From the sequence record MN018232.1: 64,000 nt of DNA. One strand, 5' to 3'. Every line of letters begins with the position of its first letter. Within the stretch, counting starts at the first letter, position 1. The notes below the pieces were generated by a model. It had not been told where the DNA came from, ran no database searches, and saw nothing but the letters and a program-made list of their open reading frames with translations. Both the position numbers and the translations under genes were made by a program. This document shows positions 18,341 through 54,240 of this stretch, one piece after another.

Positions 18341-18385
18341 AACTGGCACTCTGCCCTTGACACGGGGTCTTGACTGACCTATACT
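18341..18385 (+). promoter_or_regulatory. Sigma70-type early promoter with upstream AACTGGCAC box
   Basis: TTGACA (18357-62)-N17-TATACT (18380-85); box ends 30 nt before the -10. Confidence 0.8.
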
Positions 18386-18408
18386 ACTAAGGTAATCAAC
18401 AAACAACT

Positions 18409-18633
18409 ATGTCTGACTTCACCTTTCTTAAGAATGAAGATGACGAATTTCTGACTCGGGTCGTGGTTGACCCTCACCTCAGTAAGTTCTATCTTTACTC
18501 TAGTGTCGGTAACAAACGAACCGTTGACTGTGACGACGAAGACCAGTTCTCCCGTGTTCTTGACTTGATTGAAAAGGTAGTTGACGAGGACATCGTTGCT
18601 TATGCTGAAGCTCCAGTCAAAATCGGCTTTTGA
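18409..18633 (+). CDS. Acidic hypothetical protein (74 aa)
   Basis: First ORF after the early promoter. Confidence 0.8.
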   Translation: MSDFTFLKNEDDEFLTRVVVDPHLSKFYLYSSVGNKRTVDCDDEDQFSRVLDLIEKVVDEDIVAYAEAPVKIGF

Positions 18634-18690
18634 TTTGCAAAATGCCGAGAAAAAAATCCCAGTAAATTTTAGGGCCCATTACTTTTTTAT

Positions 18691-18861
18691 ATGAGACCAG
18701 AAACCCGACAATCCATGGAAATGTTATTTTCTGCAAAATGGAATTTACCAGAAGCAGCAAATAATTGTGGTCTGACGTACAAAGAGATGAAAATTACTTT
18801 TAATGAGTATTGTCGTCTCAATCCACCAACCTACGATAAACTGGGTAATCCTATTACCTGA
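18691..18861 (+). CDS. 56-aa hypothetical protein
   Basis: Read by hand: MRPETRQSMEMLFSAKWNLPEAANNCGLTYKEMKITFNEYCRLNPPTYDKLGNPIT; below ORF-track cutoff. Confidence 0.7.
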   Translation: MRPETRQSMEMLFSAKWNLPEAANNCGLTYKEMKITFNEYCRLNPPTYDKLGNPIT

Positions 18862-18867
18862 TTTTTT

Positions 18868-18949
18868 GGGAGTGTGATGAAATCGGTAAACATACAGAAT
18901 TTAAAATTCTGCGGCAGTAGCCTTGTGGGTTCAAGTCCCACCACTCCTA
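18868..18949 (+). tRNA. trnL: tRNA-Leu(TAA)
   Basis: GGGAGTG/CACTCCT acceptor, CAGAA-TT TAA AA-TTCTG, long variable arm, GGTTCAAGTCC. Confidence 0.92.
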
Positions 18950-19006
18950 TTATGAATTGAGTGTTTTATTATTCGTTGTTAGAATACTACCTAATACGAA
19001 ACATAC

Positions 19007-19321
19007 ATGCCACTTACACCAACCAAATACGACAAAATATATGTCAAATCCAGAAATCCTTACAAGACCCCTGAACCTGAGATATATAATGATGAGAAGG
19101 AAATACAACTTAGATTGTATTTTCGGTGTGAAAGTAGTCACTACACAAAACACATGAAAGTCAATTTCTGGTATTCCAACGATATGGAGGAATGGAGATG
19201 GACACTCACTTCTGACGAAAATCTCAAGATTATGGAGAGTGGAAATCGAGAAGAACTTCGTGATGCGATGAATGATGTTGCTAACACAGTAGAGTATCTA
19301 CTTGACAATGATATGATCTAG
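19007..19321 (+). CDS. Hypothetical protein (104 aa)
   Basis: Clean ORF; EEWRWTL motif. Confidence 0.75.
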   Translation: MPLTPTKYDKIYVKSRNPYKTPEPEIYNDEKEIQLRLYFRCESSHYTKHMKVNFWYSNDMEEWRWTLTSDENLKIMESGNREELRDAMNDVANTVEYLLDNDMI

Positions 19322-19330
19322 TGTTATAAT
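19302..19330 (+). promoter_or_regulatory. Perfect-consensus sigma70 promoter with extended -10
   Basis: TTGACA (19302-07)-N17-TATAAT (19325-30), TG at 19322-23. Confidence 0.88.
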
Positions 19331-19335
19331 ATTAG

Positions 19336-19391
19336 AGCCGTGTGAAGGAAGCACTCTGTTGCTAATCAACCACCCTCTGGGTGGTTTTTTT
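19336..19391 (+). ncRNA. Candidate ~55-nt small RNA
   Basis: Lies between the consensus promoter and the intrinsic terminator AACCACCC-TCT-GGGTGGTT+T-run (19368-91); no ORF. Confidence 0.55.
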
Positions 19392-19395
19392 ATGT

Positions 19396-19403
19396 AATAA
19401 ATA
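19396..19403 (+). promoter_or_regulatory. T4-type late promoter
   Basis: AATAAATA 29 nt before the ATG of the 1633-aa gene. Confidence 0.75.
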
Positions 19404-19432
19404 TCTAATAATAGATATCGTGTGCAAGACAG

Positions 19433-22400
19433 ATGCCATTATCTCGCTTAGATAATTTTCTGAAGAACGTTAAGGGAAATATTCTGTATGTTGATCCAAA
19501 CAATTTGGATGCAACTGATGGGGTAGAGAACCAAGGTAATTCTCTTGCACGTCCATTCAAAACCATTCAAAGAGCTCTGGTAGAGGCATCAAGGTTCTCC
19601 TATCAGAAAGGTAAAGATAATGATAGGTTTGAAAAGACTACAATTTATTTGTCACCAGGTGTCCACCACATTGATAATAGACCTGGTTGGATTCCGACTG
19701 GAGGAAATACGTTTCTACAGAGGAATGGTATAACTTCTTCTGATTTTACTGCTTTTAGTAACACATCAAACTTCGATATCTTTGATGCCAACAATATTCT
19801 CTATAAACTGAATAGTATCCATGGTGGTGTTATTATGCCTCGTGGTGTATCTGTTGTTGGACAGGATCTTAGAAAATGTGTGATTCGTCCGATTTATGTT
19901 CCAAACCCTGAAAATAATGCAATTGAACCCTCAGCAATCTTAAGAGTAACTGGTGGTTGTTATCTGAACAGTTGTACTATCAAAGATGCTGATCCACAAA
20001 AACCAGCATATAAAGATTATACGACAAACAAATTCAAACCAACATTTTCACACCACAAACTGACTGTTTTTGAATATGCGGACGGTAATAATAAAGTCAA
20101 TATCAATGACGACTTTATTTCATATTCAACAGACCGTACTGATTTGGATATGTATTATGAGAAGATTGGTATTGTATATGGTCCAGCAAGTGGAAGAGAG
20201 ATTGAACCTGATTATCCAAGTGCGAATGTAGATATTGAACCAAGAATTGATGAATATAGAATTGTTGGACCTGTCTCTGGTGAAGTAGGTATCAACAGTA
20301 TCAAGGCAGGTGATGGTGTCACACCAACTTCTGTCATTGATGTTAAATTGTCAAATGCGATCATTGGTCTTAATGTTGATACTAACGTTATCATTAATGA
20401 TGTAACCGATAAGAGATATAACGGTACTTATCTTGTCACAGAAATCACCTCTACTAATGAAATTGGTGTTACAGGATTTAAGTATGAAGTTCCTGTAGCT
20501 CCAGGTGACGCACTTCCTAACCCAACTGGTACAAGTGTAGTTCTTTCTACTGATACTGTTACTTCTGCATCTCCCTATATCTTCAATGTGTCATTGAGAT
20601 CTATTTTTGGTATGTGTGGTATGCATGCCGATGGTAGTAAGGCAACGGGTTTCAAATCCATGGTTGCTGCACAATATACTGGTGTAGGTCTTCAAGTTGA
20701 TGACAACGCATTTGTCAAGTATAATCAAAATAGTGGCTCGTTTGATGATTCAACCACTATTCCTAATTTACACACTGACATTGATGCTGTATATAAACCA
20801 GAGTATTCAAACTATCACATTAAGGTATCCAATAATGGATTCATGCAATTGGTATCCATTTTCGCAATTGGATATTCAAATCAATTCTTAGCTGAGTCTG
20901 GTGGTGATTTTTCTGTCACAAACTCAAACTCCAACTTTGGTCAGATTGCTCTGACTTCAAGAGGATATAAGAATAATGTATTCTCACAGGATGATGTTGG
21001 TTACATTACTCAAATTATCCCACCAAAGGCACTTAAGCCAGAAATTGCAACAGTAGAGTTCTCATCTATCGATGTAACAAAGACAACATCTGTTGGAGAT
21101 ACTTCAAGACTTTATCTTTATAACTTCACCAATCCTGATGAGGCACCTAATACGACCATTCAGGGTTATAGATTTGGTTCAAAGAAAACAGAAAATATTA
21201 ATGTTGTCATTCCTGTAAGTGGTACACCTGAAGTATTCAGAGCAAGAGTTGTCATGGACAACACTGCATATGCTGCCAAGAAGGCAACAGGATCAAAAAT
21301 GGCCAGGGTTGGTAGAAATGTATCAACTGGTAATAGTATCACAAACTCTACATTTACCTTTACAGAAGACCACCAGTTCATTCAAGGTGAATCGATTAGA
21401 GTCATTTCAAATGACGGTAGACTTCCTGATGGTTTAGAGAGTAATAAAGTATACTTCTCTATCGTTGATGGTCTGGGTGGTAATCAATTACAACTTGCAC
21501 AATCATTTAACGACTCGCTGTCAGGAAACAAGATTTCTATCAACAATCTTGGTGATACTCTGATTGTAGAGAGTAGAGTTGGTGATAAGGATGCTGGTGA
21601 TGTAGGTCACCCAGTTCAATATGATACGACAGAACGTCAATGGTATGTTAATGTCTCATCTGCTTCTACTGAAAATAATCTGTACGCAAAAGTTGTTGGT
21701 GGTGGATTAGGTGATGCAACCCCAAGGTCTTACATCACAAGACTGAAAGATACCAGACAATCTGCAGATAGAATTCATAAAGTAAGATTCGTCATTCCAT
21801 CATCTACAGGTTCTGATTCAGCAAGACCACCTCTGGATGGTTATGTGATTCAACAGTCTAGCGATGTAACTAGTACATCAAATACAGAGATTGCACTTGA
21901 TTTCAACCCTGGTTCTGTTACGATGAGCAATGATGCTCAAATGAGAAACTTTAGTTTTATTGCTAATGTTGATTACAGGTCAGGACTTGCATTCTATACC
22001 ACTGAAAAACCACATGGTCTTTCTATTGGTTCAACCGTTGAGATTAATAATGTTACAAGTACACTCTTCCCAACTGTAGGTGTTGGTAATTCTGGTTTCA
22101 ACGGTACATACGAGGTCACTGGTATCAGTAGTGCAAGAACATTCTCGGTAAATCAGATTCGATCAAGTCCTGGTACCTTTACTAACAATACTTCACAGAG
22201 AACCACTGCACTTCCAACAGTCAAGAGAAAGAAATTCTCTAAGGACTTTTACGTTTATAATGTAGAAACTATTAATGACTATAAGAATGGAGAGCAAGAT
22301 GGTATCTATTACCTGAGTGTTCTTAATGCTGATGTAAAACCATCTGTTGCACCATTCAATGTTGAAGAATATGCATTCTCACAACCTGTCGGAAATCTTT

Positions 22401-24334
22401 ATCCACAGTTAGATAGAGACAATCCAAAATCAACTGCAACATCTGCAGCATGTTATGCTATTCCAAGTAATATCGGTGAGACGGTTATTAATAATCCCAC
22501 CAATAGTATCACTGGAGAGACTTTAGAAGAACTCTTTAGTGATAGTGGAGTTGGTGCTGGTATTACAGATATTGTATCAAATAACGTTGGTACTGCATAT
22601 ACAATCTTTACTGATACTGACCATGGTTGTAACAGAATTACCAGAGCAGTTATTGATAACCCAGGGGCTGGATATGGTGATGGTTCATCAACCATTCAAT
22701 ACTATTATAATGCAACACTTGAAAACCTTGGTGCTGGTTCACTTGGTAGAAATGCAACAGCATTGGTTACTGTAGATGGAACATCGACAGGTGAAATTAT
22801 TGACATTGCTGTCATGGATGGTGGTACTGCATTCGTCGAGGGTGATACTTTCAGAGTTGTTGGTATTGCAACAACCACTGGATTTAGTGCAGCAACAGGT
22901 TCTGTCAACAAGATTTATGATAACAGAAACGACACCATTAGAATTGCTGGTATCAATGATTATGATGGAAGAGCATACAATTCACTTTATAGAGTGACTT
23001 CAATTCCTGGAATTAAAGAGATTGAAGTAGAACCATTGGCACCAGTATCACCAGGTATCACAACAGTTGGTCTTGGAAACAATATATGTGCCCCAGCTGC
23101 ATTCTCTGTCATCGGTCCTGCATATGATACGAGCAATTTTGTTTATAATAAGGATGTTGGACTTGCAACAGTAACTACAGACTATGCAAACAACTTTAGA
23201 GTTAATAACAGTGTAGTCATCAGTGGTGCTGCGCAGACATTCTACAATGGTTCATTTGTTTGTGTTGATAAGATTGGTCTGACAACTGTTGTTCTTCAAG
23301 TTGGTGTCAATACCGTCACTCCTGCGACTGGTGGAACTATCAGACTTCACAGTGGTGGTATTAGAAATAACTTTGGTGATTTGGTAGTTGGTAATGGTAG
23401 ACTTCATGGTAGAGAGACACCAATTTATGCTGGTATCACAACTACATTGTCTGCGGCTATTACAAGTAAAACCACTGATACAATTAACGTATCAAATATG
23501 ACAGACTTTGGTTTCTTGATTGGTGATTACATTCAAGTCAATGATGAAATCATGAGAATCAAGACCACTGTAAGTAGAACTTCTGGTGTAACACAATTGA
23601 AGGTATTCAGAGGTGTTTATGGTTCTATCGCAGATACCCATGTATCTGGTTCAGTAGTTCAGAGAATTCTTTTCTATCCTATCGAATTTAGAAGAAACTC
23701 ACTGATCAGAGCATCTGCACACACATTTGAATATCTTGGTTATGGTCCAGGTAACTACTCAACCGCATTCCCTGATAAGCAAACAAAACAACTTACACTT
23801 GATCAACAAATTACTGCTCAATCACAGTCCACTAGTGGTGGTGTTGTCAACTACACTGGTATGAATGATAGAGGTGACTTCTTTATTGGTAATAAGAGAA
23901 TCGCATCTAATACTGGTAGAGAACAAGTTTATGATACGCCAGTTCAAACGATATGTGGAGAAGACCCATATACGGTTGGTTCTACAAACGATGTTTCCGA
24001 TTTCAACTTTGTTGATAGTTCTGTGGTTAAGATTGAAAGAAACGTTGTTGTTGATGGTGGTGACAAGTCCAACATTCTCTCAGAGTTCAATGGTCCTGTT
24101 CAATTCACCAAAAAGGTAGTCAGTACTTCATCTGAAGGTATTGAAGCCAATAACATCTTCATTCAAGGTAATGCCCAGGTGTCTAGAAAAATCACTGTCG
24201 GTATTGCCACTCCATCTGATGCTGGTAACCCTGGTGATATCGTTTACAATGCAAACCCAGCAAGTGGTGGAACAGTTGGTTGGGTCTACACAACTAACAA
24301 TGAGTGGAAGACATTTGGTACTATCAGTAGTTGA
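19433..24334 (+). CDS. Large virion structural protein (1633 aa)
   Basis: MPLSRLDNFLKN... N-terminus typical of cyanomyophage tail/baseplate proteins; beta-helix-like N-terminal region, DNPGAGY/DGGTAF modules. Confidence 0.85.
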   Translation: MPLSRLDNFLKNVKGNILYVDPNNLDATDGVENQGNSLARPFKTIQRALVEASRFSYQKGKDNDRFEKTTIYLSPGVHHIDNRPGWIPTGGNTFLQRNGITSSDFTAFSNTSNFDIFDANNILYKLNSIHGGVIMPRGVSVVGQDLRKCVIRPIYVPNPENNAIEPSAILRVTGGCYLNSCTIKDADPQKPAYKDYTTNKFKPTFSHHKLTVFEYADGNNKVNINDDFISYSTDRTDLDMYYEKIGIVYGPASGREIEPDYPSANVDIEPRIDEYRIVGPVSGEVGINSIKAGDGVTPTSVIDVKLSNAIIGLNVDTNVIINDVTDKRYNGTYLVTEITSTNEIGVTGFKYEVPVAPGDALPNPTGTSVVLSTDTVTSASPYIFNVSLRSIFGMCGMHADGSKATGFKSMVAAQYTGVGLQVDDNAFVKYNQNSGSFDDSTTIPNLHTDIDAVYKPEYSNYHIKVSNNGFMQLVSIFAIGYSNQFLAESGGDFSVTNSNSNFGQIALTSRGYKNNVFSQDDVGYITQIIPPKALKPEIATVEFSSIDVTKTTSVGDTSRLYLYNFTNPDEAPNTTIQGYRFGSKKTENINVVIPVSGTPEVFRARVVMDNTAYAAKKATGSKMARVGRNVSTGNSITNSTFTFTEDHQFIQGESIRVISNDGRLPDGLESNKVYFSIVDGLGGNQLQLAQSFNDSLSGNKISINNLGDTLIVESRVGDKDAGDVGHPVQYDTTERQWYVNVSSASTENNLYAKVVGGGLGDATPRSYITRLKDTRQSADRIHKVRFVIPSSTGSDSARPPLDGYVIQQSSDVTSTSNTEIALDFNPGSVTMSNDAQMRNFSFIANVDYRSGLAFYTTEKPHGLSIGSTVEINNVTSTLFPTVGVGNSGFNGTYEVTGISSARTFSVNQIRSSPGTFTNNTSQRTTALPTVKRKKFSKDFYVYNVETINDYKNGEQDGIYYLSVLNADVKPSVAPFNVEEYAFSQPVGNLYPQLDRDNPKSTATSAACYAIPSNIGETVINNPTNSITGETLEELFSDSGVGAGITDIVSNNVGTAYTIFTDTDHGCNRITRAVIDNPGAGYGDGSSTIQYYYNATLENLGAGSLGRNATALVTVDGTSTGEIIDIAVMDGGTAFVEGDTFRVVGIATTTGFSAATGSVNKIYDNRNDTIRIAGINDYDGRAYNSLYRVTSIPGIKEIEVEPLAPVSPGITTVGLGNNICAPAAFSVIGPAYDTSNFVYNKDVGLATVTTDYANNFRVNNSVVISGAAQTFYNGSFVCVDKIGLTTVVLQVGVNTVTPATGGTIRLHSGGIRNNFGDLVVGNGRLHGRETPIYAGITTTLSAAITSKTTDTINVSNMTDFGFLIGDYIQVNDEIMRIKTTVSRTSGVTQLKVFRGVYGSIADTHVSGSVVQRILFYPIEFRRNSLIRASAHTFEYLGYGPGNYSTAFPDKQTKQLTLDQQITAQSQSTSGGVVNYTGMNDRGDFFIGNKRIASNTGREQVYDTPVQTICGEDPYTVGSTNDVSDFNFVDSSVVKIERNVVVDGGDKSNILSEFNGPVQFTKKVVSTSSEGIEANNIFIQGNAQVSRKITVGIATPSDAGNPGDIVYNANPASGGTVGWVYTTNNEWKTFGTISS

Positions 24335-24371
24335 TAAATAATAAAAAAATAGTGGGGGAGAGTGAACCCAA

Positions 24372-26714
24372 ATGGCGATAGATAAGGATTTTGTCGTTAA
24401 AAATGGTTTACAGGTCAACGAAAATTTAATTTTTGCTGATTCTGACAATGATAAAGTTGGTCTAGGTACTACCACCCCCAATAGAAAATTAGTTGTAATT
24501 GGTAACGCTGAGGTAAGTTCAGACCTTGCAGTAGGTACCACAATTACAGCTCAAAGAGGTGCCTTTACTGGTATCATTACTGCCAATGACGGTATTGATG
24601 TTGGTGTAGGTGGTACTTTTGTATCGATTAACAAACTCGACGCTAAGATTGGTATCGGTTCAACCTCACCAGTTTATACTTTAGACCTTTATGGTCCCGT
24701 ATCCACTGGTACAACAGCAGCATATATTTTTGGTGATGTAGAAGTCACTGGTACGATTAAGGGTAATCGACTCGAAGGTCAGATTTCTGCTGGTGGTACA
24801 GTTGGCTTTACTAATGTCACTGTAGATAATGTACTTGATGCAAATAATGCAGAGGTATATACTAAGTTTAATATTGAAGAAGTCACTAGTGATACCTTTA
24901 GATTCTTAGTTGCGGGTGACCCACCTGGTATTGGTTTCACTCAGAACACTGACAATCCAGAAATTTATGTTTCAAGAGGTCAGAAATATGAGTTCCACCT
25001 TGACTCTGGTGGTTTCCCATTCTACCTTAAGACACAACCAACTGCTGACCTGAATAATCAGTATTCAGATGGTGTCACTAACAATGGTGCTCAGGTTGGT
25101 GTTGTTACCTTCAAGGTTCCATTCAATTCACCTAACATCCTGTACTATCAAGCATCAAATGTTGCTGGTATGGGTGGTACGATTTATGTCGATAATGATA
25201 ATAAAACCTATACTGTTGGTGTTCTGACAGTATCTCAGTTCTTAGATAGTAACACTCAAGCAGACTTTGAACAGATTTATGTCTCAGGTATTGGTACTAT
25301 CAATAATCTGAAAGGTCCAGACTTCAGTGTCAGTTCTGGTATTCTGACTGTCAGACAAGACCAGACTGCTCTGATTGGAGTTTCAACTGGTGCTGATAGA
25401 GTCAGTCTTCAAGAGAAGAGTGATAATGTAGCATATCAAGTTCCATTTAGTGATACTTTAGGTATTGGTTCAAACTATCAAAACTTGTATGTTGATAGTG
25501 AAGATGGACAGATGTCCTACAACCCATCAACCAATCGACTGACTGTCAATAGAGTTATTGGTAACTTGTCTGGTATCGCAACAGGTGCTGACAATATTAA
25601 TATTGACTCAAGCAGTGCAAATACTAAATTCCAAGTTACATTTAGTAACCCAGGAAGTGCAGACTATCAGAGACAATTGATTGATAGTGATAGTGATAGA
25701 TTAACTTATAATCCTTCTACAAATACACTGTCATCAACCAATATCACAGCCACAACGGTTACTGCTGGTTTGGCTGGTACTGCAACCAATGCAGACAATA
25801 TTAATGTAGATAAAAAATCTAATAATACAACTTATCAGGTATTATTCAGTGACAATCAAGGAGCTGGTTATCAAAGACCTTATATTGACTCTCAATCAGG
25901 TCAATTCACATATAATCCATCTACTAACACTCTGACTGCAGCAAATATTGCTGGTGCTGGTGATAATCTTACAAACCTTGATGGTTCAAACATTTCACAA
26001 GGTACTATCAATGCAGATAGAATTCCTGATGCATCAACAACCGCTCAGGGTGTAGTACAACTTTATGATACTTTCCCACCTAACAGTTCATCAACTACCA
26101 GAGCAGCAACAGCAAATCTTGTCACCGATGTTTATGATGAAGTAAGAACTGCAGTGATACCTGCAGGAACGACTATGTTGTTCTATCAGGCATCTGCACC
26201 ATCAGGTTGGACTAAACTAACAACTCAGAATAATAAGGCACTTAGAGTTGTGTCTGGTAGTGGTGGTGGTACGGGTGGTAACAATACGTTTACCTCAACT
26301 TTTGCAACAAGAAGTGTTCCACTACTGAGACACAATCACACTGCTTCATCTGGTAATCAGAGTGCTAATCACAGCCATGGTGTTACAGTTGAAAGTGGTG
26401 GTTCACACACTCACGGTATTTCTGATCCTGGCCACAACCACGATTATTCCGCACCTAGTGGAAATAAGGAGTTTGGTAATAGAAGTGCTAATGCTGCAGC
26501 ATCTACCCGTGCTAATTTTGTTAGTGGCAATAGACTAACTGGAATCTCAATTAACAGTGGTGGAAGTCATAATCATGGAACCAGTGTAGGTATTAATAAT
26601 GCAAACCACACTCACGGTATTACCGTTGACAATGAAGGTACCTCTGGAGCTTCAATGGACTTCAGAGTTCAATATATTGACGTAATCATTGCATCTAAGG
26701 ATGCCTATCCTTGA
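24372..26714 (+). CDS. Tail fibre protein (780 aa)
   Basis: VGLGTTTP fibre repeats, cupredoxin-like insert, three ~60-aa repeats, collar motif IPAGTTMLFYQASAPSGW, six HxH motifs; ATAAATA at 24334-40. Confidence 0.85.
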   Translation: MAIDKDFVVKNGLQVNENLIFADSDNDKVGLGTTTPNRKLVVIGNAEVSSDLAVGTTITAQRGAFTGIITANDGIDVGVGGTFVSINKLDAKIGIGSTSPVYTLDLYGPVSTGTTAAYIFGDVEVTGTIKGNRLEGQISAGGTVGFTNVTVDNVLDANNAEVYTKFNIEEVTSDTFRFLVAGDPPGIGFTQNTDNPEIYVSRGQKYEFHLDSGGFPFYLKTQPTADLNNQYSDGVTNNGAQVGVVTFKVPFNSPNILYYQASNVAGMGGTIYVDNDNKTYTVGVLTVSQFLDSNTQADFEQIYVSGIGTINNLKGPDFSVSSGILTVRQDQTALIGVSTGADRVSLQEKSDNVAYQVPFSDTLGIGSNYQNLYVDSEDGQMSYNPSTNRLTVNRVIGNLSGIATGADNINIDSSSANTKFQVTFSNPGSADYQRQLIDSDSDRLTYNPSTNTLSSTNITATTVTAGLAGTATNADNINVDKKSNNTTYQVLFSDNQGAGYQRPYIDSQSGQFTYNPSTNTLTAANIAGAGDNLTNLDGSNISQGTINADRIPDASTTAQGVVQLYDTFPPNSSSTTRAATANLVTDVYDEVRTAVIPAGTTMLFYQASAPSGWTKLTTQNNKALRVVSGSGGGTGGNNTFTSTFATRSVPLLRHNHTASSGNQSANHSHGVTVESGGSHTHGISDPGHNHDYSAPSGNKEFGNRSANAAASTRANFVSGNRLTGISINSGGSHNHGTSVGINNANHTHGITVDNEGTSGASMDFRVQYIDVIIASKDAYP
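25377..25955 (+). repeat. Three ~60-65-aa coding repeats in tail fibre
   Basis: (T/N)AD(R/N)(V/I)...(Y/F)QVxFS...YQ...(V/I)DS...(S/T)YNPSTNxL occurs 3 times. Confidence 0.8.
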
Positions 26715-42045: not shown

Positions 42046-44298
42046 CTGAAGACCATACTCTTTAATGTAGTGATTATATAGAAGAGCACCACGTACATGA
42101 ATAGGAGAACCCTTTGCATAGATCGTAGAGTGACTCTTATGTTTCTTCACGTCAGATACTGATCGAGGGAATGCAATATCTTCAGGAGGTAAGTTGTTGA
42201 ACTTCTTTCTCGCGTCATCGATGAACTTGATCACATCATCTTCCGTACCATTCATCATCAACTTCAGTGCATCCTTAATCATTTTTCGACAAGGAGCAGG
42301 AGTCGATGACTTTACAGCCTCAATACCCATGATCTTGAGTTTAGGTTCTGAATAACGAACACCTTCACTATCCCAGACATTGAGAATGTATCTCTTCTTT
42401 GCTGTCCAGATTCCACGGTCTGCAATGTTCTCCCGTTTCATCTGCATCTTCTGAGAATATGCGTTCACATACGTCGCCAACTCTTGATACGATGACTCGA
42501 TAAAAGGTTCCAGTTTCTCCTCACAGACCTTGTTAAGTAACGATACAACTGTTGCTTTTTCGCCAGATTTAGAACTAAGAAATTTAGAAACAACAGGTCC
42601 AAAATTAATATAGATTGAGTCAGTGTCAGATGCGATGACATAATCCGTATCTGTAGTTTGTAACAGGTTATTTAGATACCCATTTACCTTATTCTCAATC
42701 CAACGAATAGATGTTTGTCCTGAAAGTGTAATGGCTTCTGCGTTTGCAAGTTTGAAGAAACGGAAGTATTGGTTACCAATTGCACCATAGCAAGAGTTCA
42801 GTGCGATCTTACGAGCCATCTGGAAGTTGTTATACTTGGCAATGTCTTTCTCTAGTTGTTTGGTAGGAGTCTTCTCATACTCCTGTTTCGCCTGGAGCAT
42901 CTTCTTCTTGAAGATCTTACGTTCTGCGTACATCTTCTCCATCAGTTCAGGCATGAACCCTTTGATGTCCTTACGGAACATTGCACCGTTGGCACAGACC
43001 GCATAGTCCTTGTACATCTCAAAGGTGATCTCCTTGTTCAGGATCCGATCGATGGTTGCAGAGGGGTGTTTCTCATCTACCAGGGTCTCAGGAGAGATGT
43101 TGTACTGCATCATCAAGTGAGGGTACAGGGAGTTCAAGTCAAACGACACCACCCAGTCATAGACACCAGGGACTGGTTGTTTCACGTAGGCACCCTCATA
43201 CCTCTCAGACTTCTCCGAACGGTCACGGGGAGGAATTACAATGTTTCTCTTCTTGAGATAGTTGTAGATGATCGTATCCCACATACGAACCTGATACATC
43301 ACATCGACAAAGTTCACCTTGGCGTCATATGCCATGGTCAATGCCAACTCAATCAGTTTCATCTTGTCTTCCATACGGTCAACAAGTTCCACGTCAATGA
43401 TGTTGTAGTCTACAAACTTCTTCCAGTTACCTGTGTAGAAATCTTTGAAGGTATCAAACTCACTGTGATCAAGTTTCTTCTGACCAAGTTCAACTTGAGC
43501 GATATAATCCAGTCGATAACTCTCTTGGTTTGTGTAAGTAAACTTTTTATACAGTTCCAGATAATCAAGTGTAGTGACACCAGCAATGTCGAAAGTATTG
43601 AATTCGCGACCCATGATCGTAATCTTTTCTTCACTGATGATACCCCACGGAGAAAGAAGTTTCATCTTCTTAGTTCCCATAATCCGATCAATACGACCAC
43701 AGAGATACGGAATATCATACAGACGACAGTTCCAACCAGTCACAACCTCAGGTGGATTTGAACTCCACCAATATAAGAATGAGTTGAGCATTGCAACTTC
43801 ATCCTCAAAGTGATAGTAAGTCACATTGTCCTGTGTAGGAGTATATGGCTTTCTACCCCAAGTCTTAATCTGCTTGGTTGCGTAGTCCTGAATGGAGATG
43901 GTCAACAACTCCTCAGAACAAGAATCAGGATCAGGGAATCCCTCCTCAGATTTAACCTCGATGTCGATCGTTACAAGATTGATTTTCTTAATATCAAACT
44001 TGATCTCATCTTCAGGATATTTGTCAGAAATGTATTGGAAGACATAACGGTCATTACCGTAGATCTTGAATCCATCTACATCTTCATATTTCTTGTAAAA
44101 TTCTCTACAATCTCTTACCGTACCTGGTTGAATAGCTTCTACATTTTCACCCTCAAGAGTTTGATACTCAGTCTCTCGATTTGATTTTACAAACAGAGTG
44201 GGAGAATACTCTTCTTTGAAGATGACACTCTGTCCATTTTCATATCCACGAACCAGGAAGTTGTTACCAACGACCTGGATATTCGTATAAAATCTCAT
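42040..44298 (-). CDS. gp43: DNA polymerase family B (T4 gp43-like), C-terminus missing
   Basis: DIE exonuclease, DLNSLYP, KIALNSCYG, SDTDS, KKRY; natural sequence ends at ~aa 753. Confidence 0.95.
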
Positions 44299-44549
44299 TT
44301 AACCAGGTCTTCGTACTTCTCGATCAGTTTACTATTGGGTTCTACGATAGTCAAGATCTTATCAGAATGGATCATGAACGTATTTTGTCTCGTAAGGTCA
44401 ACCAGCCATGGAGACAATGTACCATCCTCATTCAACTCAAATGGTTCAATCAATTTACAATCAGGTTCTCCTAGATCAGTGGCTACCTCCTCAATCTGAG
44501 TCAGAATAACTTTGTCAGTTGTTAGAATCAGAATTTTTAGGTTGTTCAT
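44295..44549 (-). CDS. Hypothetical protein (84 aa)
   Basis: ATGA-coupled to gp43; similar to the upstream ORF. Confidence 0.8.
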   Translation of the reverse strand: MNNLKILILTTDKVILTQIEEVATDLGEPDCKLIEPFELNEDGTLSPWLVDLTRQNTFMIHSDKILTIVEPNSKLIEKYEDLVK

Positions 44550-44868: not shown

Positions 44869-44914
44869 ATTATACCAACAAAAAAGGGAGGTGTCAAACT
44901 GGATTGTGCCAGTT
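44869..44914 (-). promoter_or_regulatory. Consensus sigma70 promoter for the gp43 operon with AACTGGCAC box
   Basis: TTGACA (44897-92)-N17-TATAAT (44874-69); box at 44914-06. Confidence 0.85.
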
Positions 44915-44921
44915 ACCTCCC
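44880..44921 (-). terminator. Intrinsic terminator overlapping the promoter
   Basis: GGGAGG/CCTCCC outer and AACTGG/CCAGTT inner stems, then 6 T. Confidence 0.75.
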
Positions 44922-44946
44922 CGTCTGCGGCGACGATATTCAGTTT

Positions 44947-45704: not shown

Positions 45705-45724
45705 TACTAATTATAACAGATACG

Positions 45725-46621: not shown

Positions 46622-46622
46622 A

Positions 46623-46910: not shown

Positions 46911-46936
46911 AATTTTGTTCGATAATGATTATATTT

Positions 46937-47326: not shown

Positions 47327-48270
47327 TTGAAGTTACACTCCACCATGATTTCAGTTAGACAAGCCAACATATTTATTTCTTGATCCGCGACGAAAGAACT
47401 TTGATACTGATACTTAGCAATAATGAGAACAGCAGCAGCGATCCCACTACCATCCAACTTTGAATATATTGCGTCGTAAACACTACGAAGAAGAACGTGA
47501 GGGTCATTATCAAGATTATCCACGACCCACTTCCTGACCTTTGGAAAATCTTTGTCCTTAAGGCTTTTGAATAAATCATCGGTTTTTACGTTACTAAAGG
47601 CAGCAAGGATACCAGAGTCAATCTTACCACTGACAGAGTATCGTTGGAGTTCATTAAGAACTCGTCTCCAATCAGGGAAGTGTTTCTGGATTAATTCGAC
47701 AAGAACTTTCGGATCATATTCCACACTCTCTGTCTCAAGAATAGTCCTGAGACGCTGGAAGAACTTGGCTGCGAGTTCTTGTCGTTCTTTTCCTTTGATA
47801 GAGAAATCGACAACGGCGCACCTGGAGTGGAGCGGTTCAATAATTTTGTTCTTGTAGTTACAGGTGAAGATGAATCGACAGTTACCAATAAACTCCTCAG
47901 TAAATGCCCGTAGGCAGAGTTGTACATCTGGGGTCGTGTTATCTGCCTCATCAATGATGATGACTTTGTGTTTTGCAGTTGATGAAAGTGAGACGGTCGA
48001 AGCGAAATTCTTCGCATTGTTTCTGACCGTATCGAGAAAACGTCCCTCATCGGATCCGTTGATGACATAATAATCTACTCCAAGTTCATGACAAAGTGCT
48101 TTGGCCACCGTGGTTTTACCACAACCAGGAGGACCAGATAGAAGAAGGTTTGGAACCTCACCTTTCTCTACAAATTTTTGAAATGTATTCTTAATCCCAT
48201 CAGGAAGAATACAGTCCTCAATAGTCTGGGGTCGGTAAGATTCAACCCAGACAAATTCATTACGACTCAT
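47323..48270 (-). CDS. gp44: Clamp loader large subunit
   Basis: WVESYRP, GPPGCGKTT, IIDEAD, SRC. Confidence 0.96.
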   Translation of the reverse strand: MSRNEFVWVESYRPQTIEDCILPDGIKNTFQKFVEKGEVPNLLLSGPPGCGKTTVAKALCHELGVDYYVINGSDEGRFLDTVRNNAKNFASTVSLSSTAKHKVIIIDEADNTTPDVQLCLRAFTEEFIGNCRFIFTCNYKNKIIEPLHSRCAVVDFSIKGKERQELAAKFFQRLRTILETESVEYDPKVLVELIQKHFPDWRRVLNELQRYSVSGKIDSGILAAFSNVKTDDLFKSLKDKDFPKVRKWVVDNLDNDPHVLLRSVYDAIYSKLDGSGIAAAVLIIAKYQYQSSFVADQEINMLACLTEIMVECNFK

Positions 48271-48272
48271 AA

Positions 48273-48959
48273 TTAATTACGATGGTTTTTTCTGATAATC
48301 TTGTCCTGTAAATTGTGCAAGATAAAGTATGGATCTTTACTTGCGTCTTCTAGATTTTCATGATAAGTTGGTTCAATATAGTTTAACGCACTTGTCAACC
48401 CCTGATACATATCATACTCAAACGGATCTTTGAGTTGTGAATGTGTCCAGAATATAACTGCATCTCTATGTCCTTTAGTGACAGTATTGACCCTATGAGG
48501 TGTTCCAGTTTTATACGTGACTGAACTACCTGCAGGTGGTTTGAATTTTACTTCTTCACCATTGATCCACAAACATAGTTCTCCTCCCTCAAAGTCATCA
48601 TTGAGAAATATCGTTGTACTAAAATCACCAAGTTGAGCATGATCATGATGAGGTTTATAAAACCCTCCAACTTCAGTTCTACTTACTAGTGGAGTTGCAC
48701 TATTTCTTGCAACAGTAAACTCAATAAACTTAATCCTCGTATCCATTCTACTGAAGACAATATCAGACAAGGATTGGTTACCCTGTGAAGTAAACTCACA
48801 TTGAAAGTTTGTCTTAATCTTTAATTTTTCTTCGTCACTACTATCAGATTGGACACTCTGATGACCATCGACCCAAACAGACTCAATATCAATCAACCGA
48901 TAGATTTCATTGATATCATTTTCAGTAAGATTATTTTCAATCAGAAGATAGTCTGTCAT
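48273..48959 (-). CDS. 2OG-Fe(II) oxygenase
   Basis: YKPHHD, TTIFLNDDFEGGEL, HRVNTVTKGHR; start at ATGA overlap 48959. Confidence 0.88.
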   Translation of the reverse strand: MTDYLLIENNLTENDINEIYRLIDIESVWVDGHQSVQSDSSDEEKLKIKTNFQCEFTSQGNQSLSDIVFSRMDTRIKFIEFTVARNSATPLVSRTEVGGFYKPHHDHAQLGDFSTTIFLNDDFEGGELCLWINGEEVKFKPPAGSSVTYKTGTPHRVNTVTKGHRDAVIFWTHSQLKDPFEYDMYQGLTSALNYIEPTYHENLEDASKDPYFILHNLQDKIIRKNHRN

Positions 48960-49480
48960 ACCCATTCAGGTTTACGATCTGGGATACGAAGATAGTTATC
49001 TTTTACCCAGGGTTTAGATGCAATATACATTTTATACGCATCAAATGTAGAAATACTTGTATCGTACTTGAATTCTTCAGGCATGGCACGAACAAACGGT
49101 GTGTGTGTTCCACTTCTTCCTGTAGGATCACCTGTAGGAAGTATTTCTTTTGCTGCAAGAAGAGAATGAAAACAAGTATGAATTTTACCATACCTCATCT
49201 TGTATTCATCACACAAAGCGATACCGTGGTGAAGTAACCATTGCCAGTTCATCACGAACTCACTTGCCCAGATGGTACAGGGATGGTTACGGAAGGCACC
49301 CTTCTCTGTGCTGTAAGGGGTTCCGTCGGCCTTAGGGATGGTCCCAAACCCATGACCCCATTTGTCTGAACAGACGATAGACAACATCTGACAGGTCTCT
49401 AGAGGCATCTTGACAATATGTTTGTCAGGGAGAACTTTGGCAGACTCCCATGGACATTCACTGGTTACAAAGATATTCAT
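48956..49480 (-). CDS. Pyrimidine dimer DNA glycosylase/endonuclease V-family protein
   Basis: MNIF...DKHIVKMPLETCQML, HPCTIW, YGKIH. Confidence 0.8.
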   Translation of the reverse strand: MNIFVTSECPWESAKVLPDKHIVKMPLETCQMLSIVCSDKWGHGFGTIPKADGTPYSTEKGAFRNHPCTIWASEFVMNWQWLLHHGIALCDEYKMRYGKIHTCFHSLLAAKEILPTGDPTGRSGTHTPFVRAMPEEFKYDTSISTFDAYKMYIASKPWVKDNYLRIPDRKPEWV

Positions 49481-49812
49481 TCTAAAGGTCTCTTGAAAGT
49501 TTCAGAAACTAAATCAGTTGCACCCATTGCCTCGTACATATAAGTTGCACCAGACCTTGGGTTTGTGTGTTCACCGCATGTAAACACATCACAGACTGCC
49601 ATACCATTCTCAGGCCATGTGTGGATTGAGATATGAGACTCTGCAAGTAGAGCCACGGCAGTAACTCCTTGAGGTTGAAATTTATGGGATTGAATACCAA
49701 GGAGTGTACTCTCTGACAACGAGGCAGCATTCGCAAGAACGTTACGAATGTGAGCCTCATCATCTAATAACCCAAAAGGACAACCCTTCAACGTGAAGAG
49801 TATATGTCTCAT
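49477..49812 (-). CDS. speD: S-adenosylmethionine decarboxylase proenzyme
   Basis: FQPQGVT, LAESHISIHTWPE, DVFTCG. Confidence 0.93.
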   Translation of the reverse strand: MRHILFTLKGCPFGLLDDEAHIRNVLANAASLSESTLLGIQSHKFQPQGVTAVALLAESHISIHTWPENGMAVCDVFTCGEHTNPRSGATYMYEAMGATDLVSETFKRPLE

Positions 49813-50477
49813 CAGCCGAAAGTGGAATCAGGTTCCAGAGCGATATAATAGGTCACGTCGATGTTCTGATTCTGGAAACGGGACAGAAGTTTTTCTGACA
49901 CAACCACGTCGTAGTTACCAGGAACAATCTTCAGGTTCTCTTCTTTGAAGTTGAATACGAAATCATTGTCAGTCTCACCAACAACAATAGAGAAGTCATT
50001 AGAAGTATCGTTCTTCTTGTCACGAGCAACAAGTTTGATGACACCAGCTTCACCGATGACAGAGATATCGGGAAGTTGATAGACAGATGCAGCCTTCTTC
50101 AGTTTCTCCAGTTGTTGACTGGTCAGTTGGAAACAAACATCCTCAGTCGGAAGAGTGATCTCTTTCTCAGGAGGTGCAACGATCACAGACGGATCTGCAA
50201 AGAAATACTTAGAACGGGAACGACCTTCTTTGATCACAACGTACTGATCATTGTCAAAATCAAGATCGGGACTTTGATGAAGAGACAGACCATTGAGGAA
50301 CTGGTTCAGATCGTAGATACCGAAGTCTTTAGGGAACTGTTCGGATACATTGGCTTCAACCAGGATGTTCTTCATCACTGAGATAGAACGCAGTTTCTGT
50401 CCCTCTTTGAACAGGATAGACTGGTTGATCGAAGAGAAGTTCTTCAGGAGAGATACAGTAGATTCAGAAAGTTTCAT
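49812..50477 (-). CDS. gp45: Sliding clamp (221 aa)
   Basis: MKLSESTVSLLKNFSSINQSI, FGIYDLNQFL, YYIALE; start reassigned to 50477. Confidence 0.95.
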   Translation of the reverse strand: MKLSESTVSLLKNFSSINQSILFKEGQKLRSISVMKNILVEANVSEQFPKDFGIYDLNQFLNGLSLHQSPDLDFDNDQYVVIKEGRSRSKYFFADPSVIVAPPEKEITLPTEDVCFQLTSQQLEKLKKAASVYQLPDISVIGEAGVIKLVARDKKNDTSNDFSIVVGETDNDFVFNFKEENLKIVPGNYDVVVSEKLLSRFQNQNIDVTYYIALEPDSTFG

Positions 50478-50877
50478 AATTACCTTTTGGTTGCTTGTTG
50501 ATGCCAGAGAAATGATAGAGGAGGATACAATAGTGGATTGCTTTGAGGATGTCAAGTTTAGACTTGCCTTCCTTCTTACCAAACCGTGAGAGATACTTTA
50601 TAGCGTTGGATCGACAGAATGCTTCTGAGTCACCGATACTGTCGATCAGATCAAGTGTCTGAGTCTTGTTGTCGTTTGCGTAATGTGCTTTGTACGTACC
50701 ACCAAGATAGTCACGGATTTCTTTTAGGATTACATCCTCCTCATATTTCCAGAAACCATTATCATTATTCAAATTCAAATCCATTTTAAATTCATTAACA
50801 GGTGTAAGAGGAGTATACTCAAACCCCTCCTCAGGTAGCTCATTCATTACATCATACAATAAGGACCATGAGATCAT
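50464..50877 (-). CDS. Hypothetical protein (DUF3310-like, 137 aa)
   Basis: AHY...FCRSNAIKYLSRFGKK...DILKAIHY; start reassigned to MISWS. Confidence 0.75.
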   Translation of the reverse strand: MISWSLLYDVMNELPEEGFEYTPLTPVNEFKMDLNLNNDNGFWKYEEDVILKEIRDYLGGTYKAHYANDNKTQTLDLIDSIGDSEAFCRSNAIKYLSRFGKKEGKSKLDILKAIHYCILLYHFSGINKQPKGNYETF

Positions 50878-50881
50878 TCTA

Positions 50882-51970
50882 TCAACTTTCCATAGTGTTG
50901 TCAACATTAAGGACATCAATACTGTCAGTATTCATGGTGAAGTCTGCGTCCACTTTGTCATACAGTTCCAGGAATGCAGACTTGGTTTCATCGTCGAATC
51001 GATTGATACAAACTTGAATGGCTTTGGCTTTATCACCAAAGATAGAGTATGCACGAACGATGTGAACCAGACGACGGGTAGAGATAATCTCATCAATACC
51101 ACCATCATAGAAGGTCTTACGGATGATGTCTGCCCAGTCAACCAGGTGCTTACAGAATTCCTTGTCATCACAACCAGACTCAAGAATTTTCTGTTCTGTA
51201 GCAGGAGTCGGATAAGACTGTTCAAAGGTCACACAGAAACGCTCAAGGAATGCTTCGTTGAGAACATTGGTGCCAATGAACCGACCATCTTCAGAACCCT
51301 TACCTTTAGTATTGGCGGTGGCAATGACTTGGAAACCTTCGGCAGGTTTGACAAACTTACCAATCTTCTTAAGGAAGACACCCTTACCTTCGAGAATAGA
51401 TTGGAGACAGAGAATCTTATTAGAAGCCAGGTCAACCTCGTCTAGAAGCAACACAGCTCCCCGTTCCAGAGCCTCGATGACGGGTCCGTTATGCCAAACA
51501 GTTTCACCATTAACAAGACGAAAGCCACCAATAAGATCATCCTCATCAGTCTCGATCGTAATGTTGACACGGATCAGTTCCCTCTTGAGTTGGGCACAAG
51601 CCTGTTCAACCAAGAACGTTTTACCGTTTCCAGAGAGACCCGTAATGAATGAAGGGTAGAAAAGACGGGACTTAATAATTTTTTTGATATCGCTGAAGTT
51701 ACCAAAAGTGACGAAGGAATCATCTTTCTGAGGAATCAGGTCTTGTTCGATTGCAGGAAGAGCAGCAGGTGCTTGATAGTTTTGTTCCAGTTTCTCTTGA
51801 ACCGTCAGGTTCCACTTACCACGACCAACTTTGTAGTCATTGAGTTTCTTAGTGACAGTCTGATAACTTACGTCATTCATGGCACACCATCCACGAATAT
51901 CACCAGTGGTGACCTCAGGTCCGTAGGTGTCTTGAAGAGAAGCAATGATGGAAGAAGTAGTAAGTGCCAT
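50882..51970 (-). CDS. cobS: CobS/MoxR-like AAA+ ATPase (362 aa)
   Basis: GLSGNGKT, LLDEVD, ATANTKG, AFLERF; start MALTT. Confidence 0.88.
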   Translation of the reverse strand: MALTTSSIIASLQDTYGPEVTTGDIRGWCAMNDVSYQTVTKKLNDYKVGRGKWNLTVQEKLEQNYQAPAALPAIEQDLIPQKDDSFVTFGNFSDIKKIIKSRLFYPSFITGLSGNGKTFLVEQACAQLKRELIRVNITIETDEDDLIGGFRLVNGETVWHNGPVIEALERGAVLLLDEVDLASNKILCLQSILEGKGVFLKKIGKFVKPAEGFQVIATANTKGKGSEDGRFIGTNVLNEAFLERFCVTFEQSYPTPATEQKILESGCDDKEFCKHLVDWADIIRKTFYDGGIDEIISTRRLVHIVRAYSIFGDKAKAIQVCINRFDDETKSAFLELYDKVDADFTMNTDSIDVLNVDNTMES

Positions 51971-51995
51971 AACGTGGTGTGTGTTCAACATAGCT

Positions 51996-52040
51996 ATAAT
52001 ACGACAAAACCACCCGTATGGGGTGGTGCCTGTGACAGTT
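51996..52040 (-). promoter_or_regulatory. Promoter with AACTGTCAC box, hairpin spacer and TATTAT -10
   Basis: Box 52040-32, 30-nt gap containing CCACCC/GGGTGG hairpin, TATTATAGCT at 52001. Confidence 0.65.
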
Positions 52041-52051
52041 GTCCGATTGGG

Positions 52052-54172
52052 TCAACTGATGATGTCAACAAACTGACTCAATACTTTCCTATTTAGAGAC
52101 TTGGCATTGAGATTTTTGACAAACGCGGATTTGATTTTTGCCTTGGTTGCTCCTTCTTCTACATCAAACTCAGTGTCATTATCGAGAGAAGAAGAAAGAA
52201 TACCAAAGTAAGAAGTATAACCACTGGTCTTGATTACAATCGACTTGTCCTTTTTGACCTTCTTATATGACTCTTCAGTCATGGTCCTATCATAACGGCG
52301 ACAAAACCCTTTGAAATCGGAGTTACTTGACAGACGGAAACCAATCACATTGACACCAGGATTCATTTGTTTCAAGTCCTCAAGAAGAATCTCAGTGAAC
52401 TTGTAAAACTCTGAGTTAATTTGATAGGTATGTCCAGTCTTACGATTACGGAGGTAATCACCAACGTAACAACGACCAGAACCCATACGTTCATCATCAT
52501 AGTAATGATTTGTCTTGTAATAAGGAAGGGGATTTGCCTCACCATCAGTCAGAATTACAGTGTTAACCTTTTGAACTTTATGTTTCTGTTGGAACTGAGG
52601 AATGATTTTGTGTAGACAAACGATAGCCTCATTCAAAGGTGTGCCAGAAAGACTATATCCGTGGGGAATCATATAATCTACCCAACGAACAGTAGCATAT
52701 ACAATACGCCACAGAGACTTCATCTGTTTATCAAGTTCTTTCTTATTCACATCACTGGTCAAGAAGTGAAGAAGATTGAAATCAGGGTTTACAATCATAT
52801 CAAACTCTTTGACCTCTTGAATAGGACTATCAAGATACTCTTGAAACTTAGATTCTTTCAGGTAACTGTTAGTAAAGGCATAAACATCAAAGGGAATATT
52901 GACCTTATTACAGAACATAACCAGATTGAACAACTGTTTGGTAGTTTCAAGCAAACAATCAGCCATAGAACCAGACCAATCCAGAATAAAGATTAGACCA
53001 TGGTTCTTACCATCAGGAATGACATTTACTTTCCTGAAGAGATCTTCATTGTATTTGTAGGTATGGAGTTTAGTACAATCGAGAGTACCAGTCTTAGACG
53101 TGAATGAACGAGAGTAAGCATCGGCAGACTTCTTACATTCAAACTCTTTCACAAGATAATTGACTTCTTTCTGTGCAGACTTCTTGTATTTTTCATACTC
53201 TTTGTCAGCAATATCAAAGTTTCTTGGTTCCGTCGTCCTCGTCTTTTCACAGTATGCATCGTAATACTCTTTTAGATTCAACTGATCGATCCAAGATTCA
53301 TTCAGTTCTTCATGAATAGCTTTGTTAGATACAATAATCTTTTCAACATCAACAGATGGGACCTCAAGATAACTTGAAGATGGCATACCAGGTTTGATAT
53401 CACCATTAAATTCTTCTTTACCAGACTCAAACATGTCGTCAGTATGAACTTCAAGATCGGGAGAGTTCTTATTCATACGACCCTCTGACATATCTTCAAG
53501 TTCACCAAAGTTCTCTTCATTCTCTTCTTCACGACGTTCAGCTTCTTCTTGCATCTCTTCATGAGTCATTTCCTCACCACCTGTATTAGACGGATTAGGA
53601 AGAGAAATTGCTTCAGGTTTTTTATTGTCAAAACCACCCTTCACAAACTTGAAGAGTTCTTCGGCAACCAGAACAGCATCGGCAAAGGTCTCAGTGTTTG
53701 CCATCATGTCGATGAACTTCATCTCTTCATCAGAGATAGGAACCTCAACAAAGTTACCAATCTTGAAGTAAAGGTTGGCACGGTCAGCCAGATTGTAAGT
53801 AGAGATATCATCCTCTTCAAGACCAAAGAAATCGTCTTCTGCAAGTTCTTGATAACCTTTGTAAAAACTTTTTGCCAGACCAGGATACCGACGTTTCATC
53901 AGTTTCTCGATACGTGCATCTTCAACCACGTTGACAAACTGTTTAGGAATACGATCTTCCCATGACCAGTCATTAGGAGTGAACAGAGCATGCCCAACCT
54001 CATGACCCACCAACATATCGTACACAGTATTAGACGCCCTCTTCCACATCGGGAGAGTCAACACACGACGTTCCACATCAAACTGTGCGGTCTCCACGTT
54101 ACGGTTCTCAACCACCATATTCTCAGTGGCTAGGAGTTTGGCAAGTTGTGACTTGATTTCGTAATTAATCAT
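52052..54172 (-). CDS. Metallopeptidase-motif/VWA protein (CobT-like partner of the AAA ATPase)
   Basis: GHEVGH, NVVEDARIE, DWSGSM, GTP, LTDG. Confidence 0.85.
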   Translation of the reverse strand: MINYEIKSQLAKLLATENMVVENRNVETAQFDVERRVLTLPMWKRASNTVYDMLVGHEVGHALFTPNDWSWEDRIPKQFVNVVEDARIEKLMKRRYPGLAKSFYKGYQELAEDDFFGLEEDDISTYNLADRANLYFKIGNFVEVPISDEEMKFIDMMANTETFADAVLVAEELFKFVKGGFDNKKPEAISLPNPSNTGGEEMTHEEMQEEAERREEENEENFGELEDMSEGRMNKNSPDLEVHTDDMFESGKEEFNGDIKPGMPSSSYLEVPSVDVEKIIVSNKAIHEELNESWIDQLNLKEYYDAYCEKTRTTEPRNFDIADKEYEKYKKSAQKEVNYLVKEFECKKSADAYSRSFTSKTGTLDCTKLHTYKYNEDLFRKVNVIPDGKNHGLIFILDWSGSMADCLLETTKQLFNLVMFCNKVNIPFDVYAFTNSYLKESKFQEYLDSPIQEVKEFDMIVNPDFNLLHFLTSDVNKKELDKQMKSLWRIVYATVRWVDYMIPHGYSLSGTPLNEAIVCLHKIIPQFQQKHKVQKVNTVILTDGEANPLPYYKTNHYYDDERMGSGRCYVGDYLRNRKTGHTYQINSEFYKFTEILLEDLKQMNPGVNVIGFRLSSNSDFKGFCRRYDRTMTEESYKKVKKDKSIVIKTSGYTSYFGILSSSLDNDTEFDVEEGATKAKIKSAFVKNLNAKSLNRKVLSQFVDIIS

Positions 54173-54195
54173 GGTGGTCTGTCTCGATGTAAGCT

Positions 54196-54240
54196 ATAAT
54201 ACAACGATACCCACCTGTTTCTCGGGTGGGTTGGACAGTT
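54196..54240 (-). promoter_or_regulatory. Promoter with AACTGTCCA box, hairpin spacer and TATTAT -10
   Basis: Box 54240-32, 30-nt gap containing ACCCACC/GGTGGGT hairpin, TATTATAGCT at 54201. Confidence 0.65.

Follow-up and report, generated by a model that had tools for sequence, protein, structure and literature searches.

The 64,000-nucleotide (nt) stretch analysed here, which we call the window, comprises bases 62001-126000 of Synechococcus phage S-B43 (MN018232.1, Kyanoviridae; host Synechococcus sp. MW02) and carries four promoters in which a 9-bp box, AACTG(G/T)C(A/C)(A/C), stands at a fixed distance ahead of the -10 hexamer. Coordinates without a prefix are those of the window, and other S-B43 coordinates are marked "record". 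A preliminary description had reported the four boxes at gaps of 30, 31, 30 and 30 nt from their -10 hexamers, and on re-reading the sequence we found each of them in place. All four are intergenic and oriented like the gene that follows. Sites 1 and 2 have a TTGACA -35, as had been described, and we confirmed that sites 3 and 4 lack a -35, have TATTATAGCT in common at the -10, hold a GC hairpin within the gap and show CCAAT five nt ahead of the box. No box precedes the TTGACA-17-TATAAT promoter at 19302. The elements of the four promoters are listed below.

18341-18349, plus strand: box 1, AACTGGCAC, a proximal half-site beginning immediately past the stop codon that ends the preceding structural gene.
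18357-18385, plus strand: core of promoter 1, with TTGACA at 18357-18362, a 17-nt spacer and TATACT at 18380-18385; gap 30.
44906-44914, minus strand: box 2, AACTGGCAC, which forms the inner palindrome AACTGG-N6-CCAGTT with 44902-44897.
44897-44892, minus strand: -35 of promoter 2, TTGACA, with a 17-nt spacer to TATAAT.
44869-44874, minus strand: -10 of promoter 2, TATAAT; box-to-hexamer gap 31.
52032-52040, minus strand: box 3, AACTGTCAC, upstream of cobS, with orthologues in other phages.
52041-52053, minus strand: putative remnant of the distal half-site of box 3, GACCCAAT plus N5, overlapping the peptidase stop codon.
51996-52001, minus strand: -10 of the cobS promoter, TATTAT; gap 30, predicted start site near 51989.
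54232-54240, minus strand: box 4, AACTGTCCA, upstream of the gene for a peptidase of 706 amino acids (aa), with orthologues in Bellamy, S-SM2 and Syn9.
54241-54253, minus strand: distal half-site of box 4, GTGCCAAT plus N5, matching GTGCCAGTT at 7 of 9 positions when compared with the S-SSM7 dyads.
54196-54201, minus strand: -10 of the peptidase promoter, TATTAT; gap 30, gene start 54172.

Promoter 1 leads into a 74-aa open reading frame (ORF) at 18409-18633 (phrog_662), further small ORFs and a transfer RNA (tRNA). This tRNA gene (18868-18949, plus strand; Rfam tRNA, 58 bits) lies inside the small-ORF unit, and the feature table of the record holds only coding-sequence entries around it. Promoter 2, the sole 12/12 sigma-70 match within 44.4-54.7 kb, precedes a conserved 109-aa ORF (44844-44515, minus strand) at the head of the DNA-polymerase module. 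The ORF belongs to phrog_431, has 80 relatives in IMG/VR and is without annotation in MN018232; it is the first gene after the box promoter and overlaps the annotated 84-aa ORF 44295-44549 (phrog_483) by 35 nt. At site 3, the longest cobS ORF begins at ATG 51991, which cannot be on the cobS transcript because it lies just 4 nt behind the -10; the cobS start is 51970, on which annotation and orthologues agree.

Register and conservation of the box

The bare degenerate 9-mer occurs 14 times in the window against 6.2 expected, an approximately twofold enrichment. For the composite pattern, defined as the box followed by 29-31 nt and TANNNT, we counted four occurrences against 0.33 expected, and none of 100 shuffles reached four. 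Box-to-TANNNT distances in the upstream regions of five phage genomes peak at 29-31 nt (11 of 26 pairs). If transcription starts about 7 nt past the -10, the box lies at about -51 to -43, centred near -47. These positions are UP-element territory, and they raise an explanation that needs no transcription factor: host RNA polymerase itself might contact the box, either through its alpha C-terminal domain, in the manner of an UP element, or through an extended sigma contact, and so strengthen promoters that lack a -35. The strict register with the -10 and the occurrence of the box both with and without a -35 fit such a contact. The box, however, is not A/T-rich, is paired palindromically with a distal half and is nearly absent from host promoters at this register, which would be odd for a site that polymerase reads directly, and we consider this explanation quite unlikely.

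To place the window in its genome, we counted motifs over the full 213,993-bp S-B43 record, pieced together from annotated stretches, finding three further box promoters at record 173946 (plus strand), 141087 (minus strand) and 143516 (minus strand), seven in total. We also scanned by pattern the genomes of Syn9, Bellamy, S-SM2 and S-CAM9, which represent four other genera. Syn9 has about seven box promoters (43127, 44788, 127506, about 130390, 148756, 162067 and 164154), and matches favour the main coding strand over the other strand (12 vs 3 in Syn9, 11 vs 1 in Bellamy), above the reversed-pattern control. The box recurs ahead of the same genes: cobS in Bellamy, S-CAM9 and Syn9, the peptidase gene in Bellamy, S-SM2 and Syn9, and the leader ORF of DNA polymerase (gp43) in Bellamy and S-SM2.

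For cobS, we assembled 74 distinct promoters from IMG/VR contigs whose CobS proteins are 77-95% identical to the query. The box is present at no more than one mismatch and a gap of 28-32 nt in 60 of the 74 (41 at 30 nt and 11 at 31 nt), and at control offsets none came within one mismatch. The spacer between box and -10 in these promoters holds a GC hairpin and a T-run whose sequence differs among contigs. With the box retained and the hairpin sequence varying, we conclude that the box is under selection and that the hairpin is conserved solely as structure.

Dyad organization and spacer content

Comparison with S-SSM7 changes how the element is to be read. This phage has about 19 promoters, mostly in a small-ORF array, of the form GTGCCAGTT-N5/6-A(A/G)(C/G)TGGCAC, then 30 nt, then TATAAT, and the gap from half-site to -10 is nearly always 30, as in S-B43. 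These 24-bp dyad cassettes share with the S-B43 promoters a proximal half-site A(A/G)(C/G)TG(G/T)CAC, the 30-nt gap, a TATAAT-like -10 and a place at the heads of non-structural units, together with, at the better-kept sites, a distal inverted half 4-6 nt upstream. They differ in number (about 19 copies against seven) and in that the distal half has mostly decayed in S-B43, where the spacer is often swapped for a terminator hairpin and the promoters serve cobS, the peptidase gene and the DNA-polymerase module besides small ORFs. The cobS set shows the same arrangement, with the consensus distal GACCAGTT-N4-AACTGTCCAC proximal and a CCAsTT-like distal partner in 42 of the 60 box-bearing promoters. 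Within the window, the distal inverted half is good at site 4 (GTGCCAAT-N5) and weak at site 3 (GACCCAAT-N5), and sites 1 and 2 have none upstream; at site 2, CCAGTT stands downstream of the box in place of an upstream partner. Abundant exact palindromes were not found in S-B43, Syn9, Bellamy, S-CAM9 or S-SM2.

Judged by these alignments, the box appears to be the promoter-proximal half of a dyad, GTGCCAGTT-N4-6-AACTGGCAC, and not a stand-alone 9-mer. The cobS consensus, site 4 and S-SSM7 all show the same dyad, and CCAAT-N5 at sites 3 and 4 is best read as the decayed remnant of the distal half-site. The preliminary description had proposed a separate promoter class defined by the 9-mer; the class, with its upstream element in fixed register with the -10 and its dispensable -35, is borne out, and the self-sufficient 9-mer is not. 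It had also suggested overlap with motifs already reported for early genes of cyanomyophages, and this is probably right, the same box and the same gap being present in the roughly 19 small-ORF cassettes of S-SSM7. Doron et al. (2016, ISME J) reportedly described a "novel regulatory element" of early genes in Syn9 and P-TIM40, and we infer that the box/dyad class is probably that element. The S-B43 promoters thus belong to a partly known class and are not a new kind; what is new are the half-site-only versions and the conservation ahead of cobS, the peptidase gene and the DNA-polymerase module. A separate S-B43 cassette, ...ACTCACCTCCAAA(T/G)GTCC(A/G)C-TATAGT, lies ahead of small ORFs at record 54459, 55518, 202452 and 207373 (minus strand), and two of its four copies start with GTGACAG, which is the inverted half-site.

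The spacer between box and -10 may contain a -35 of consensus sequence or the hairpin that terminates the preceding gene, and some spacers have neither. Three hairpins lie in or across the spacers of the window.

44880-44922, minus strand: terminator hairpin of the gene upstream of site 2, with outer stem GGGGAGGT/ACCTCCC and six T; -26.3 kcal/mol, z -3.7.
52005-52027, minus strand: intrinsic terminator of the peptidase gene, ACCACCC-cauac-GGGUGGU plus UUUU, in the cobS promoter spacer; stem 52027-52009, called terminator-like.
54209-54231, minus strand: GC hairpin ACCCACC-N9-GGTGGGT in the peptidase promoter spacer, without a T-run.

The hairpin at site 2 encloses box 2, its partner CCAGTT and the -35 TTGACA. 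For the ORF upstream of the peptidase gene, a terminator-like hairpin lies farther up, at about 54287-54261. When 34 gp43-leader promoters are aligned, 7 of the 11 outer-stem pairs show compensatory changes, and 32-33 of the 34 sequences retain the three predicted inner pairs (TGG/CCA of AACTGG...CCAGTT). From the T-runs, the folding energy and the covarying outer stem, we conclude that the hairpins at sites 2 and 3 serve the upstream genes as terminators and occupy a spacer whose own sequence is unconstrained. The GC hairpins, being variable, covarying and in most promoters terminators, are not part of the recognition signal.

These hairpins bear on an explanation at the level of RNA or of the terminator itself. 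On this view, the box would serve the upstream transcript, either as one arm of a stem or as a signal for processing, and its distance to the -10 would simply have come along as the cassette was inherited. The box does pair with CCAGTT inside the gp43-leader terminator hairpin, in a few lineages both arms have changed in concert (AATGG/CCATT, ACCTGG/CCAGGT), and a box-derived hairpin, GGACAGT-N6-ACTGTCC plus a T-run, occurs elsewhere in S-B43. We nevertheless regard a role in RNA as highly improbable, for hairpin-free box promoters keep the gap (S-B43 record 141087 and 143516; S-CAM9 47746; IMG/VR locus L155), box variants in the cobS set are uncompensated in the upstream partner, and the freely covarying outer stem of the gp43 leader encloses inner pairs that hardly vary. 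A cruciform that would bring the box beside the -10 was also rejected; it leaves an unsuitable spacing of about 11 nt, and hairpin-free sites retain the 30-nt gap.

The nearest known parallel for this packing is the promoter-early stem-loop (PeSL) cassette of T4-type phages (Arbiol et al. 2010; Comeau et al. 2014). Like PeSL cassettes, sites 2 and 3 are compact intergenic units that end one transcript and start the next (hairpin, T-run and -10), with a sigma-70-type -10, a -35 in some copies only, and a place ahead of different genes in different phages. According to Comeau et al. 2014 (PMC4122927), the PeSL stem-loop sits just upstream of the -35. In S-B43, by contrast, the stem-loop lies between box and -10, overlapping or replacing the -35, and the promoters carry an extra operator-like dyad. 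Another spacer variant has three TCTGCCC repeats about 10-11 nt apart inside the 30 nt (Syn9 44790; IMG/VR loci L160, L173, L199 and L204); it heads gp61 in Syn9 and cobS in other contigs, a possible hint of the indels and gene exchange among close relatives that go with PeSL cassettes, and one copy of the repeat is present at S-B43 site 1. As an abundant early cassette, the triple-TCTGCCC spacer was ruled out by its single copy in Syn9.

Host counterparts and the candidate reader

Looking for the half-site in host genomes, we found that a palindrome, AACTGKCAC-N-GTGMCAGTT, stands ahead of yfr2 small-RNA genes (Rfam Cyano-1) in marine Synechococcus and Prochlorococcus-like genomes. Among five host genomes, all matches at no more than one mismatch adjoin yfr2 genes, except one with a G+C-rich centre in a single genome (G005). 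The host half-sites are AACTGGCAC, AACTGTCAC, AACCGTCAC and AAGTGTCAC; the same variants occur in the phages, identical in sequence to the phage half-site. Across the yfr2 promoters, the palindrome takes two positions, overlapping the -35 region or about 35 nt farther upstream, and many promoters have the GGACAGTT half alone. In one host class, the inverted half lies about 42-48 nt from the -10.

The yfr2 palindrome has a described counterpart, CGRE1, given by Lambrecht et al. 2018 (PMC6191309) as a 21-nt element of marine Synechococcus whose inverted flanks, GTTG and CAAC, are separated by 13 nt. Going by that published description, the host palindrome appears to fit CGRE1. The same paper reports that PMM1637, a GntR-family protein of the PlmA subfamily, was pulled down with a yfr2 promoter bait carrying CGRE1, and that in electrophoretic mobility shift assays PMM1637 shifted CGRE1-bearing promoters, with binding seen only for the yfr2 and yfr4 promoters (PMC6191309). 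CGRE1 and the phage element share the half-site AACTG(G/T)CAC / GTG(A/C)CAGTT, a position upstream of a -10-only type of promoter, and a half that can be displaced by an upstream terminator, as at yfr5 (PMC6191309); they differ in the order and spacing of the half-sites and, in many host copies, in the distance to the -10. In the three hosts searched, a single strong GntR-domain gene was found per genome, about 334-356 codons long.

Judged by sequence identity, the host GntR-family regulator is our best candidate reader of the phage element, in preference to a phage factor. A dimeric protein on the dyad would help the unmodified host RNA polymerase holoenzyme to use the -10, and the bound dimer would replace or supplement the -35 contact, which would leave the promoter able to accommodate a terminator, as PeSL-like cassettes do. 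The likeliest such protein would be the single GntR-family regulator of the host, PlmA (the PMM1637 homologue), which binds the related CGRE1 in yfr2 promoters. By copying the host operator, the phage would start a subset of its pre-replicative transcription units, which in S-B43 would be those of cobS, the peptidase gene, the DNA-polymerase module and the small-ORF clusters. We hold with moderate confidence that a dyad operator with its box 30±1 nt ahead of a host-type -10 defines a conserved Kyanoviridae promoter class that is read by host PlmA; reading by PlmA is, as a mechanism, leading but unproven.

Several observations weigh against PlmA as the reader. The yfr5 promoter, which has one intact half, was not shifted by PMM1637 (PMC6191309), and most S-B43 sites retain just one good half-site. 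Host sites are ordered half-site, N1, inverted half-site, and phage sites inverted half-site, N4-6, half-site; with arrangements this different, one rigid dimer should not bind both alike. Among the yfr2 promoters of Synechococcus, many have the half-site 17 nt from the -10 instead of 30; host geometry is heterogeneous, and a register shared with the phages depends on which hexamer is taken as the yfr2 -10. Searching for RNA sequencing runs of S-B43, we found none, merely metagenome contigs with small shares.

Scans in both directions define how far the phage and host elements resemble one another. An inverted half downstream of the box, as in the host order, is recognisable at site 2 only, and there 1 nt closer (AACTGGCAC-A-ATCCAGTT); sites 1, 3 and 4 have none. 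The full CGRE1-type palindrome, searched as ACTG-N11-CAGT, was not enriched in the phage genomes, and a scan for GTTG-N13-CAAC gave noise save for one Bellamy site. For the host genomes, we counted 0-1 occurrences of the composite of box, gap and -10 per 2.4-2.9 Mb, at or under the control count, and neither the composite nor the extended motif was enriched. The composite is therefore not a general host promoter feature. CGRE1 was not found upstream of the host plmA gene, and the collection of papers searched contained no published link between CGRE1 and cyanophages.

Alternatively, a phage protein, virion-borne or made very early, could read the dyad with the same specificity, evolved or converged upon, as a phage-controlled switch of the middle type. 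In support of a phage reader, the density of composite promoters is phage-specific, the half-site arrangement is unlike the host palindrome, and the genes served (cobS, peptidase, replication module) are comparable to the middle-mode genes of T4. No candidate gene came to light, however: we found no GntR domain in S-B43, Syn9, S-SSM7, Bellamy or S-CAM9, and no MotA_activ or AsiA domain in S-B43, Syn9 or S-SSM7, with a positive control that gave no signal in the latter search. Moreover, the early-type small-ORF arrays of S-SSM7, which are under the same cassette, should fire before phage proteins exist. On balance, a phage-encoded reader seems unlikely.

The preliminary description had set the element apart from the T4 MotA box, and this distinction stands. 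As in T4 middle promoters, the -35 is replaced by an upstream box that keeps a set distance from a sigma-70 -10; the MotA box, however, is of TGCTT type, lies at -30 and works with AsiA, whereas the S-B43 element is AACTGKC at about -47 with a palindromic partner. Cyanomyoviruses are without motA and asiA, and their early/middle control is unclear (reviews; PMC2984593).

Other known elements were compared and set aside. CTGGCAC resembles the -24 element of sigma-54 promoters and was rejected on finding no -12 partner at N5; to our knowledge, cyanobacteria have no sigma-54. Sites for NtcA, the Pho box, CRP, LexA and HLR1 do not match on inspection, and the reverse complement of the box, read as the -35-like element of a divergent promoter on the opposite strand, has no consistent -10.

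Neighbouring features and phage biology

Two further features of S-B43 lie apart from the box promoters. Downstream of the box-less promoter at 19302, about 55 nt without an ORF are followed by an intrinsic terminator, CCACCC-tct-GGGTGG plus seven T (19302-19401, plus strand). This interval is a candidate phage small RNA; an Rfam search with it returned no family match, the best hit being GadY at E 0.33. The S-B43 psbA coding sequence (record 186645-188042, minus strand) encodes 466 aa, comprising D1 without its first residues and a glycosyltransferase-like C-terminal extension, and the joining may be a real fusion or an artefact of assembly or annotation.

In T4-like cyanophages, how transcription is started and timed without MotA and AsiA is only partly understood. 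In several genera, cobS, the peptidase gene and the DNA-polymerase module have promoters marked by one conserved upstream element whose distance to the -10 is strictly kept, and these promoters tolerate a terminator where the -35 would stand. PlmA is tied to PII-PipX nitrogen/carbon sensing and to the induction of Yfr2 by high light and nitrogen stress. More tentatively, it is possible that the phages copy the host PlmA operator in a phage-specific register, with the proximal half 30 nt before the -10, and thereby gate pre-replicative units, including the DNA-polymerase module, cobS and the peptidase gene, by host physiology; a single half-site would then suffice, leaving room for the terminator. 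The half-site match offers a concrete candidate reader, PlmA, which would link the nitrogen and light status of the host to phage expression in a testable way. The motif also serves as a practical marker of transcription-unit starts in Kyanoviridae, and here it exposed an unannotated conserved ORF and the correct start of cobS.

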